From Macrostomum lignano (lineage: Eukaryota), in the NCBI GenBank assembly GCA_002269645.1, contig NIVC01001380.1, positions 124,001-188,000 on the forward strand: a stretch of DNA of 64,000 nt, read 5' to 3'. Under the pieces are notes generated by a model that was not told where the DNA came from, made no database searches, and worked only from the letters and a program-made list of their open reading frames with translations. Position numbers and translations under genes: made by a program. Positions within the stretch are counted from its first letter, which is position 1. Every line of letters starts with the position of its first letter. Positions 12,854-49,540 of the stretch are shown here, piece after piece.

Positions 12854-13104
12854 GTAAGTTCCGTGCTCCTGACCCCGTGACCTCAGTTGACCCCTTTGAC
12901 CTCTCTTGACCTCATAACTCCACTGTACCCAATAAGTTCGGTATATCCGATGACCTCACCTGACCCCATGACCTCAGTTGATCTATTGACCTCCCATGAC
13001 CCCACTTTCCTAATGATCTTTGTTGATCCAATGACCCCACTTTACCTCAGACCTGACGAGGCCTTTCTTGCTTTGACTCGTTGCCTCACCGGATTTCACT
13101 GACA

Positions 13105-13600
13105 CTTCTCTCTCCGCCTCCCACTTTCCTTCTCCCCACCTCACTCTCCTCTCCCCCTCTCACTCTCCCTCCCCCCTCTCACTCTCCTCTCCCCCTCTCA
13201 CTCTCCCTCTCCCCCTCTCACTCTCCCTCTTCCCCTCCCACTCTCCCTCTCCCCCTCTCACTCTCCCTCTCCCCCTCCCACTCTCCCTCTCCCCCTCTCA
13301 CTCTCCCTCTCCCCCTCCCACTCTCCCTCTACCCACCTCACTCTCCTTTCCCCTCTCACTCTCCCTCTCCTCCCTCCCACTCTCCCTCTCCCCACCTCAC
13401 TCTCCTCTCCGCCTTTCACTCTCCCTCTCCGATTCCCACTTTCCTTCTCCCCACCTCACTTTCCTCCCCCCCTCTCACTCTCCCTCTCCCCCTCCCACTC
13501 TCCCCATCTCACTCTTCCTCTTCCACTCTCCCTCTCCCTCTCACTCTCCCTCTCTCCCTCTCACTCTCCCTCTCCCCCTCTCACCCTCCCTCTCCCCCTC
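13105..13600. repeat. CT-rich degenerate repeat (CACTCTCCCTCTCCCCCTCT)
   Basis: pyrimidine-only tandem units. Confidence 0.85.
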
Positions 13601-14509
13601 TAACACGGTGGCCTGGTAGTGACCTCATTACCATGTTAAAGTATATTTTTTAACAACTAATTACTTGGTTTTGCATTTTTTATGCGCAAATTCTTAGCTT
13701 AATTTCTATAGATACTACTTGTCGTTTATAGTAGCATAGCAGGAAAGTAATTCAAATACGTTTCAACGAATTTTTGGGCTCAATTTCAAGACAATCTATT
13801 TCACGGTTGAAGAAGTGACCATGAATTGTAATAAAGAATAATTTCAACACCTTCGTAGAAAAATGTGATTTTTCGTTACATTTTAACCGACTCTTTTATT
13901 AAAGTAGGAAAACTTTAAAGTTTTGCAACATCTCAGCCTGGCGCCCGCCGCCCAGGCCTCAAATTGCTGTGAAATTTGCAGAGTAAAAATCTACCGTGGT
14001 CTTGTAGGTTGGCTCTTCTTTTGCTTATTATGATAATTCTTATAGCGATCATAAAGTGGCCAACAGAACCAACTCGAGGTAGGTTTTTTAGTTGCTATGC
14101 GGGGGACATCCTGTCCCTGTGCTGTGTGTCGAGCTGAAGATTCCAGTTGAGTTGAGGTGCTACCCTCCACTCCCTCCCTTGTTGTTGGCGGTTGGGTGGC
14201 CTTTGGTCTGGGAGCCGTCCGTGTCTCAGTCTGTTCTCCAATTCTCAACTCTAAGTGTTGCGCCTGAGTGTGAAGAAGCATGGCATGGCCCAGTTTCCCA
14301 GCCAGCATCAAATCGCTAAGTCTGAAAGGTTGCTAACCTGCTCGCGCGTGTTTTCTCAGCCAGTGGGGTCTGCGTCTGTCTGTCTGCCGTCTTGTCCGGT
14401 CTTTTGGTTTTATGCATAATAATAATCATATTTAATATTTGGGCACATTTACAACTCAAGGTATTTATGACTTATGACTGACTGTTCAGGAGCAGTCCAG
14501 GAGTTAGGG

Positions 14510-15128
14510 AGTAGGCAGGAATGCGATCTATCTATCTGTCTATCTGTCTATCTATCTATCTATCTATCTATCTATCTATCTATCTATCTATCTATCTATC
14601 TATCTGTCTATCTGTCTATCTATCTATCTATCTATCTATCTATCCATCTATCTATCTATCTATCTATCTATCCATCTATCTATCTATCTGTCTATCTGTC
14701 TATCTATCTATCTATCTATCTATCTATCTATCTATCTATCTATCTATCTATCTGTCTATCTGTCTATCTGTCTATCTGTCTATCTATCTATCTATCCATC
14801 TATAGATGTAGGCAGGAGTAGGCAGGAATGCGATCTATCTATCTATCTATCTATCTATCTATCTATCTATCTATCTATCTATCTATCTATCTATCTATCT
14901 ATCCATCTATCTATCTATCTATCTATCTATCTATCATCTATCTATCTATCTATCCATCTATCTATCTATCTATCTATCTATCTGTCTATCTATCTATCTA
15001 TCTATCTATCTATCTGACTGTCTATCTATCTATCTATCTATCTATCTATCTATCTATCTATCTATCTATCTATCTATCTATTTATCTATCTATCTATCTA
15101 TCTATCTATCCATCTATATCTATATCTA
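14510..15128. repeat. Two (TCTA)n microsatellites, each preceded by GTAGGCAGGAATGCGA
   Basis: leader at ~14510 and ~14819 followed by TCTA arrays. Confidence 0.9.
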
Positions 15129-45914: not shown

Positions 45915-47925
45915 TAATCACATTTCTTGATAATCACAATTCTTGAGAATCACATTTCTTGATAATCACATTTCTTGAGAATCACATTTCTTGATAAACA
46001 CATTTCTTGAGAATCACAATTCTTGATAGTCACATTTCTTGATAATCACATTTCTCGAGAATCACATTTCTTGATAAACACATTTCTTGAGAATCACATT
46101 TCTTGAGAATCACATGTCTTGATAAACACATTTCTCGAGAATCACATTTCTTGAGAATCACATTTCTTGATAAACACATTTCTCGAGAATCACATTTCTT
46201 GATAATCACATTTCTTGATAAACACATTTCTCGAGAATCACATTTCTTGATAATCACATTTCTTGAGAATCACAATTCTTGAGAATCACATTTCTTGATA
46301 ATCACATTTCTCGAGAATCACATTTCTTGATAAACACATTTCTTGAGAATCACATTTCTTGAGAATCACAATTCTTGATAGTCACATTTCTTGATAATTG
46401 CATTTCTTGAGAATCACATTTCTTGAGAATCACAATTCCTGATAATCACATTTCTTGATAATTGCATTTCTTGAGAATCACATTTCTTGATAATCACATT
46501 TCTTGAGAATCACAATTCTTGATAGTCACATTTCTTGATAATTGCATTTCTTGAGAATCACATTTCTTGATAGTCACAATTCTTGAGAATCACATTTCTT
46601 GATAAACACATTTCTTGATAATCACATTTCTTGAGAATAACATTTCTTGATAAACACATTTCTCGAGAATCACATTTCTTGATAATCACATTTCTTGATA
46701 ATCGCATTTCTTGAGAATCACATTTCTTGAGAATCACATTTCTTGAGAATCACATTTCTTGAGAGTCACATTTCTTGAGAATCACATTTCTTGAGAATCA
46801 CAATTCTTGAGAATCACAATCCTTGATAGTCACATTTCTTGAGAATCACATTTCTCGAGAATTACATTTCTTGAGAATCACAATTCTTGAGAATCACATT
46901 TCTTGATAAACACATTTCTTGAGAATCACAATTCTTGAGAATCACATTTCTTGATAAACACATTTCTTGAGAATCACATTTCTTGAGAATCAAATTTCTT
47001 GAGAATCACAATTCTTGAGAATCACATTTCTTGAGAATCACATTTCTTAATAATCACATTTCTCGAGAATCACATTTCTTGAGAATCACATTTCTTGAGA
47101 ATCACATTTCTTGAGAATCACAATTCTTGATAGTCATATTTCTTGATAATCACATTTCTTGAGAATCACAATTCTTGATAGTCACATTTCTTGATTATTG
47201 CATTTCTTGATAATCACATTTCTTGATAATCACATTTCTTGATAGTCACATTTCTTGAGAATCACATTTCTTGATAATCACATTTCTTGATAGTCACATT
47301 TCTTGATAATTACATTTCTTGATAATCACATTTCTTGATAGTCACATTTCTTGAGAATCACATTTCTTGATAATCACATTTCTTGATAATCACATTTCTT
47401 GATAGTCACATTTCTTGATAATCACATTTCTTGAGAATCACAATTCTTGATAGTCACATTTCTTGATAATCACATTTCTTGATAATCACATTTCTTGATA
47501 GTCACATTTCTTGAGAATCACATTTCTTGATAATCACATTTCTTGATAGTCACATTTCTTGATAATTGCATTTCTTGAGAATCACATTTCTTGAGAATCA
47601 CATTTCTTGAGAATCACATTTCTTGATAATCACATTTCTTGATAATCACATTTCTTGATAGTCACATTTCTTGAGAATCACATTTCTTGAGAATCACATT
47701 TCTTGATAGTCACATTTCTTGATAATCACATTTCTTGATAGTCACATTTCTTGAGAATCACATTTCTTGAGAATCACATTTCTTGATAATCACATTTCTT
47801 GATAGTCACATTTCTTGAGAATCACATTTCTTGAGAATCACATTTCTTGATAATCACATTTCTTGATAGTCACATTTCTTGAGAATCACATTTCTTGATA
47901 ATCACATTTCTTGATAATCACATTT
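45915..47925. repeat. 16-bp minisatellite (CACATTTCTTGAGAAT)
   Basis: ~125 copies with GATAAT/GATAGT variants. Confidence 0.95.
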
Positions 47926-48934
47926 AGATACCATGCTTCAGAGTCAAGTTTTCATGCTTAATTGGTCAGCAAACCTTTATTAATAAAAATGTCTTGGCGC
48001 CACTACAGCCCAGACTCCCGCCGACATCATCAGCATCAGCTGCTTGATTGACGCTTAACAGTTGCTGATGTAGAAGTTTTTCTCCTTGAAGTTTTTTTTG
48101 ATTGTTATTGTTGGCATCGGGGCCTTCACTCATCTCTCTCTTCTCTCCCTCTGTGTCTCGGTCTTTAGTTAACATAACGGCAGATATTCAGCCCCAGTTT
48201 TCATTCAATCAGTGTTGTTGGGACACAGCTGAGAGTTAAGGTAAATTATTATGATTTCAGCATCTACCTAAGCAAGCAGAACTTATGGCTGTATAAGTCT
48301 GAAAACAAACAGAAAGACGCAAAGAGAGGACACGGGCATCGGGTGACAGACAAGTTGTGTGGGAACTCTCTCTGTGTGTGTCTAATCTCTGTGATGGACA
48401 GAAGGCAGCAGACACAGGCCCTATTTGATCTGATGATCTCGTTTCGGGTTAATCCCCCCCGAGTTCGGGAATTGGAATGGCAAATTAAATCGCAAAGCTC
48501 CGTCTTTCACACTCTCCGCGGTGTGTTTAGCAACCTTTTTTATTTACTAAAGAGAATATCGCTATGTGTGTCCCCTATAGTATGAATCATAATCAATCCA
48601 TAGGCTTGCAAATCTTATGTTTGCTTTTAGGGAGGTTTATATATCAGGTTGATACACCACTAGTAAGTGTGTTTAACATATGATTATTCAAATATATTGA
48701 GCTGGCATGGACAACTAATCAAAAAAAATTACTGTGCGAAAGAGATATCTTTATTCTCATTGAGTCAAAATAAAACATTATTTACTCACATTTCTAATTG
48801 CACTACTTGCATTAGTAGCAATGGTAGGGTTTTTAACTAGCTAAATGCATTGAAAGTAGGTAAAATTGTGTAGATTATTTAAAACAGCGACAAGATTACC
48901 GTAATTAGTGCCAAACCTTTATTTATACTAGCAT

Positions 48935-49475
48935 TGGCGCCAAATTTTATGTAATTGGCGCCAAAATTTCTTCATGCTAGCATTGGCGCCAAATTTTATG
49001 TAATTGGCGCCAAAATTTATTCATGCTAGAATTGGCGCCAAATTTTATGTAATTGACGCCAAAATTTCTTCTTGCTAGCATTGGCGCCAAATTTTATGTA
49101 ATTGGCGCCAAAATTTCTTCATGCTAGCATTGGCGCCAAATTTTATGTAATTGGCGCCAAAATTTATTCATGCTAGCATTGGCGCCAAATTTTATGTAAT
49201 TGACGCCAAAATTTCTTCTTGCTGGCATTGGCGCCAAATTTTATGTAATTGGCGCCAAAATTTATTAATGCTAGAATTGGCGCCAAATTTTATGTAATTG
49301 ACGCCAAATTTTATTTAATTGGCGCCAAAATTTATTCATGCTAGAATTGGCGCCAAATTTTGTGTAATTGGCGCCAAAATTTATATTCATACTAGAATTG
49401 GCGCCAAATTTTATGCAGTTGGCGCTAAAATTTATATTCATACTAGAATTGGCGCCAAATTTTATGTAATTGGTG
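48935..49475. repeat. 49-bp (21+28) minisatellite carrying two TTGGCGCCAA palindromes per unit
   Basis: ends ~65 nt before the GNPAT exon 4 acceptor. Confidence 0.95.
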
Positions 49476-49540
49476 CCGCATTTCTGTGTAAACCTGCAAA
49501 ATAATTTCAAAACTTCTCAATCCAAACCTCACCCGCCCAG

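Follow-up and report, generated by a model that had tools for sequence, protein, structure and literature searches.

We examined a 64-kb stretch of the Macrostomum lignano genome (64,000 nucleotides of contig NIVC01001380.1, hereafter the window), in which a complete Iroquois homeobox gene (Irx) on the minus strand lies within what we read as the third intron of GNPAT, a gene on the plus strand. GNPAT is dihydroxyacetone-phosphate acyltransferase (DHAPAT), the peroxisomal enzyme that opens ether-lipid synthesis. The window is free of N and thus of scaffold gaps, and its GNPAT exons are 100% identical to the M. lignano UniProt model A0A1I8IVR6 (P0002), which confirms the species. An initial annotation of this sequence had described the nested arrangement and suggested that the intron is a lineage-specific genomic regulatory block (GRB).

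The GNPAT model comprises seven coding exons encoding 677 amino acids, and every intron is bounded by GT..AG (Table 1). Pfam matches to Acyltransferase (PF01553, E 4e-21, residues 145-285) and GPAT_C (PF19277, E 4e-37, residues 295-540) were detected in the spliced protein, as were all four acyltransferase blocks (HxxxxD, GAFFxRR, EGTRSR and VPxSISY, at residues 164, 207, 245 and 280). The top matches of the protein are named dihydroxyacetone phosphate acyltransferases (GNPAT), not GPAM or GPAT2. At the 3′ end, a GTGAGC donor at 51529, directly after exon 6, and a TTTGCTTTCAG acceptor at 51922 would give the protein a C-terminus of -SRL. Read-through of exon 6 would instead end in -FKW; all 10 of 10 aligned GNPATs end in -AKL, -SKL or -ARL. 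Apart from intron 3, the introns measure 1108, 774, 373, 424 and 394 bp, in agreement with the 0.4-1.1 kb initially estimated. A (TAC)n microsatellite with about 108 repeats of its unit (50683-51007) takes up most of intron 5 and gives rise to long poly-Leu, poly-Ser and poly-Val ORFs that are spurious.

Intron 3 starts with GTAAGT and ends with CACCCGCCCAG. Exon 3 closes in phase 1 with ACA G/, and GT ATG CTT opens exon 4, so that the joined reading frame gives ..SLYPKT-G-MLGAILE. In tblastn searches, about 120 animal GNPAT homologues were colinear through this junction with no residues missing, the PKxG motif being placed at 12853/12855 and the following residues at 49540. Moreover, the spliced protein aligns to full-length mollusc GNPATs in a single blastp high-scoring segment pair (residues 20-636, 40% identity, E 1e-162), and the Pfam Acyltransferase match is continuous over the junction at residue 260. 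Blocks I-III are encoded by exons 2 and 3 and block IV by exon 4; therefore, the two halves would not be enzymes on their own. The initial annotation had joined exons 3 and 4 in phase across one intron, with no missing residue, and had named a nearer copy of exon 4 as the finding that would overturn the join. The join stands in these alignments, and tblastn with the same set of about 120 homologues revealed no second exon 4 or other GNPAT-like exon inside the intron. A weak GNPAT-like match at 38821-39036 (E 0.023) was rejected as spurious. We found no recursive splice sites (YYYYNCAG/GTRAGT).

The nested Irx gene has four coding exons spanning 35169-38379 on the minus strand, encodes 524 amino acids and has introns of 85, 529 and 1022 bp, all GT..AG. 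Because it has introns, the gene is not a retrocopy. Its TALE homeodomain, with the three-residue loop extension, matches Homeobox_KN (E 6e-17) and shares 88-96% identity with Irx homeodomains. An IRO box downstream of the homeodomain distinguishes Irx proteins (PMC2674049); such a box is present in the M. lignano protein, matching KPRIWSLADMASKE and KPKIWSIVEIMNKD in other Irx proteins. The protein also has an N-terminal motif in common with other flatworm Irx proteins, and Irx homologues were matched in the thousands. The gene is flanked within the intron by 22,315 bp on its 3′ side and 11,161 bp on its 5′ side, which bears out the initial description of a complete four-exon antisense Irx with about 22 kb of downstream and 11 kb of upstream DNA. 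At least one further Irx type occurs in M. lignano (P0125, 48% identity), and four Irx genes are known in Schmidtea (PMC2674049). The homeodomain is split (TQ/VS) by the 1022-bp intron (36027-37048), which holds a minisatellite with a 22-bp unit. Unlike this, the homeodomain of a Paragonimus Irx is encoded in one exon (comparison locus L002, 14011-14220).

Table 1. Features of the GNPAT-Irx locus (positions in the window)
Feature	Position	Strand	Remarks
GNPAT coding exon 1	10194-10637	+	ATG at 10194; 100% identity to P0002; donor GTGAGA
GNPAT coding exon 2	11746-11875	+	acyltransferase block I, HRSYAD
GNPAT coding exon 3	12650-12853	+	blocks GAFFIRR and EGTRSR; ends in phase 1
GNPAT intron 3	12854-49540	+	36,687 bp; GTAAGT...CCCAG; 44% tandem repeat; contains Irx
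Intronic DNA 3′ of Irx	12854-35168		22.3 kb; 48% tandem repeat; no recognisable gene
Irx coding exon 4	35169-36026	-	homeodomain end, acidic stretch, IRO box, stop
Irx coding exon 3	37049-37392	-	N-terminal motif and first two thirds of TALE homeodomain; Pfam Homeobox_KN
Irx coding exon 2	37922-38159	-	
Irx coding exon 1	38245-38379	-	ATG at 38379; 100% identity to A0A1I8IUV5 (P0121), residues 1-45
Intronic DNA 5′ of Irx	38380-49540		11.2 kb; 41% tandem repeat
GNPAT coding exon 4	49541-49830	+	block IV, VPVSISY; GPAT_C domain begins
GNPAT coding exon 5	50204-50595	+	
GNPAT coding exon 6	51020-51528	+	alternative: read-through to stop at 51581
GNPAT coding exon 7 (predicted)	51923-51987	+	ends in -SRL, a PTS1-type signal
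Example tandem arrays	3103-5140, 18284-19698, 31193-32277, 45916-47925, 53868-54984		

The remainder of intron 3 is rich in tandem repeats, at the same density as its surroundings (44% of the intron vs 42% of the window). Outside Irx, the intron holds about 17 kb of unique DNA that is neither repeat nor coding. The longest repeat-free stretches 5′ of Irx are 37851-40088 and 40507-42234, which probably hold the Irx promoter and proximal control elements. We detected no Pfam domains in the ten longest repeat-free ORFs of the intron, no Rfam match at the gathering threshold or tRNA (ARAGORN) within it, and, with tandem arrays masked, no resemblance between the intron and the rest of the window.

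We identified an intron at the identical site of GNPAT (after PKxG, in phase 1) in three outgroups, the bivalve Solemya velum (2.4 kb), the limpet Lottia gigantea (0.62 kb) and the hemichordate Ptychodera flava (0.66 kb), and no gene is called inside GNPAT in any of them. Given the same position in molluscs and a hemichordate, GNPAT intron 3 itself is ancestral. By the same sequence comparison, the intron lengthened 15- to 60-fold and came to hold Irx somewhere along the lineage leading to M. lignano. The initial annotation had spoken of a candidate lineage-specific block; lineage specificity of the nesting holds relative to two molluscs and a hemichordate only, all three without the nested gene. 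The Irx locus of Paragonimus, with 10-kb flanks on each side, contains no GNPAT-like sequence and no ankyrin gene, and it matches the window in the homeobox alone, although the two species are too distant for this comparison to tell much. A gene of about 1000 amino acids lies head-to-head with GNPAT in Solemya, Lottia and Ptychodera (comparison loci L001, 1-9270; L003, 1-94; L004, 2925-9534). Its Lottia and Ptychodera versions have esterase-type Pfam matches, and for Solemya none is recorded. This neighbor was not seen in the M. lignano window, and an apparently old head-to-head gene pair may have been broken in this species.

In combination, the results point to a genuine host/nested gene pair in M. 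lignano, with Irx antisense in intron 3 of GNPAT, and we put the probability of this reading at about 0.8. Under this arrangement, GNPAT and Irx would be separate transcription units. The spliceosome would join the donor at 12854 to the acceptor at 49540, and only this join brings all four acyltransferase blocks, GPAT_C and the C-terminal -SRL into one protein. RNA polymerase transcribing GNPAT would cross the whole Irx locus in antisense, so that interference is possible. Because Irx has introns, it would have arrived by insertion or duplication at the DNA level into the existing GNPAT intron, and not by retroposition. About 25 unrelated minisatellite arrays, present at the density of the region as a whole, would account for nearly half of the added length. 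The host intron would also supply the Irx promoter and, at a minimum, the proximal control elements of Irx, with GNPAT a bystander, or host, in the plain sense of the word. As Irx lies inside an intron of GNPAT, the two genes could not be separated without destroying GNPAT.

Several points weigh against the host/nested pair. The searched database yielded no public protein that includes GNPAT exons 4-7 or crosses the junction, and the use of the exon 3-exon 4 splice is thus read from the genomic sequence. Exon 7 and its -SRL ending are likewise predicted, and the description of Irx as fully nested applies to the coding parts of both genes. The copy of GNPAT in the window could be one of several duplicates; therefore, its intact frame is weak proof of function. 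Finally, the comparison of the GNPAT intron covers two molluscs and one hemichordate.

A more far-reaching explanation is that the locus is a true GRB with bystander turnover, in which distal Irx enhancers are spread across intron 3, selection keeps the pair together across Macrostomum or flatworms and GNPAT takes over from the ankyrin gene Sowah, the bystander of Irx in other bilaterians. We consider this possible, but on the unlikely side. A block linking Irx to Sowah has been documented (Maeso et al., 2012, cited through PMC12311624 and PMC3342872), and the linkage has already been reported as broken in several lineages (PMC3342872). The GRB concept (Kikuta 2007) makes four predictions (Irimia et al., 2012, PMC3514665), and the first two describe what is found here. 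Irx is a gene of the transcriptional and developmental (trans-dev) class with a functionally unrelated, non-developmental housekeeping partner, GNPAT, and one intron of this partner is extensive, its 36.7 kb (44% of it tandem repeat) exceeding the 1.1-kb mean of the species about 33-fold. The derived state of the nesting, which is absent in the three outgroups, and the 17 kb of unique non-coding intron DNA outside Irx also fit a regulatory block, as does the lack of an ankyrin gene in the window. As the initial annotation had noted, none is visible there: tblastn with an ankyrin consensus of our own making found no ankyrin repeat in the window, the best match (E 1.4) falling in a tandem repeat.

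These observations have to be set against others. The support comes from predictions 1 and 2 of the four; prediction 3, on conserved non-coding elements in bystander introns and on synteny preserved between species, and prediction 4, on enhancers that act on Irx, are not part of it. Tandem repeats are as dense around the intron as within it; therefore, length alone says little about regulatory content. The window extends about 12 kb beyond GNPAT on either side, which is so short that a linked Sowah may lie further out. M. lignano has further Irx paralogues, as does Schmidtea with its four genes (PMC2674049), and the second Irx type (P0125) might keep the old Sowah linkage. Closeness of UniProt accession numbers was considered as a clue to linkage and discarded as unreliable. 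The Paragonimus Irx locus and its 10-kb flanks share the homeobox alone with the window and are too distant to inform. Thus, of the regulatory-block proposal in the initial annotation, the structural part stands (one intron, a complete antisense Irx and an intact host), whereas the block label, with two of the four predictions behind it, the replacement of Sowah and the value of intron length as evidence are conjectural. The specific history in which the Irx regulatory landscape moved into the ancestral GNPAT intron in the Macrostomum lineage, GNPAT becoming a conserved, selection-locked bystander that replaced Sowah, seems to us quite doubtful; if true, it would document how nesting can bring about a change of GRB partner. 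In that scenario, antisense read-through from a housekeeping promoter might also modulate Irx.

The genome of M. lignano was recently duplicated (PMC10468722), which raises a further alternative, that an insertion bearing Irx split a redundant copy of GNPAT, leaving exons 1-3 and 4-7 unjoined while another copy supplies the enzyme. Many genes of this species are duplicated (PMC5730564, PMC10468722), and no public model or protein joins the two halves of GNPAT. The last residue of exon 3 is the end point of each of four public GNPAT models, which derive from paralogous or allelic copies (93-100% identical). Among them, the paralogue model P0001 predicts an alternative terminal exon about 3 kb into the intron, its tail mapping to 15808-15858. 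However, this tail is an ab initio prediction, and in the window it would add 12 residues followed by a stop. The reading frame is open in all seven exons, the splice sites are canonical and in correct phase, every catalytic block is present and the predicted C-terminus is of PTS1 type, none of which fits well with a broken gene. That the four 5′ models all stop at one place also suggests the same structure in every copy and no compact copy. Because all four models stop at exon 3 and the P0001 tail is intronic, we infer that the duplicated copies probably share the long intron and that gene predictors never bridged it. On balance, a split GNPAT is very unlikely. Even less probable is an assembly artefact in which the 36.7-kb segment is wholly or partly misplaced: the region is rich in repeats (42% of the window) and the M. 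lignano assembly is known as difficult (PMC5730564), but the sequence is continuous without N, the GNPAT halves agree in order, strand and phase, so that a chimera needs two false joins within one intron, and the tail of the paralogue model matches the intron 3 kb from its start.

The window as a whole is unusual for this genome. Tandem repeats make up 42% of it, in 41 arrays of at least 150 bp, far above the approximately 15% reported for tandem and simple repeats genome-wide in M. lignano (PMC5730564). Every array has its own unrelated unit, and in 15 of the 41 the unit is 20-25 bp long. Strongly strand-asymmetric arrays change polarity along the window. At the 5′ end of GNPAT (9132-16505) the plus strand is pyrimidine-rich; in arrays around Irx and beside a putative minus-strand G protein-coupled receptor (GPCR) gene (28362-32277, 36108-36593, 42235-43053 and 53868-54984) it is purine-rich, so that the sense strand of both these genes is pyrimidine-rich. 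Array polarity may follow the dominant direction of transcription, in what is a small sample. The putative GPCR gene is a single-exon ORF of 373 amino acids (56524-57645, minus strand) with a rhodopsin-type seven-transmembrane profile (7tm_1, 28.5 bits, below the cut-off of 30.5). An ORF on the plus strand at 58413-59261 matches RNase H (26.3 bits, cut-off 25.8) and is probably a retroelement remnant. With tandem arrays masked, the window contains no interspersed repeats except an inverted pair in its AT-rich end (60369-60586 and 60747-60968, 81% identity, arms of about 220 bp), which may be a foldback or MITE-like element.

Upstream of GNPAT is a coiled-coil gene (28-6511, plus strand) with exons that include 1971-2363, 5221-5313, 5681-5773 and 6416-6511. 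Three public MAKER models (P0001, P0006 and P0063) fuse it to GNPAT exon 1. The coiled-coil gene and GNPAT are probably two genes, separate or polycistronic, and not one. In public M. lignano models, GNPAT breaks off after exon 3, is merged with the upstream gene and lacks exons 4-7. The corrected model given here, with seven exons, 677 amino acids and a predicted PTS1-type end, improves the annotation of a gene of peroxisomal lipid synthesis.

Nesting of one gene in an intron of another is widespread among animals. In mouse and human, over a tenth of genes contain another gene, with a preference for long introns (PMC11694760), and in Drosophila about 6% of genes lie in introns (PMC3786989). 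Hosts tend toward broad expression and nested genes favor long introns (PMC11694760, PMC3786989). Like Mcph1/Angpt2 in mammals and tim2/2mit in Drosophila, the pair described here consists of a complete protein-coding gene in one long intron of an unrelated host, with Irx on the strand opposite to GNPAT. As a class, nested genes are enriched for small RNAs and not for protein-coding genes (PMC11694760); here the nested gene is a multi-exon Irx transcription factor. We conclude that Irx in GNPAT is a new example of a known and common animal arrangement, the host/nested pair, in a repeat-rich genome. In the searched literature we found no paper on GNPAT-Irx synteny or on Irx in Macrostomum.

The locus also resembles two arrangements in which Irx genes are tied physically to an unrelated gene. 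As in the Irx-Sowah block, a large intron of the partner could carry control elements; the differences are that the partner is GNPAT, that Irx lies inside it and not beside it, and that the linkage is known in one species. The vertebrate IRX3/IRX5-FTO region likewise involves an enzyme gene without a developmental role, and FTO introns hold Irx enhancers (PMC5054831). That case has been shown experimentally and its genes lie side by side, whereas the M. lignano Irx is nested and an enhancer role of the GNPAT intron is conjectural. Transgenesis is available in M. lignano (PMC5730564), which makes the reading testable in this flatworm. If the nesting is conserved in Macrostomum and the intron carries Irx enhancers, the locus would be a clear example of the regulatory domain of a developmental gene gaining a new bystander.

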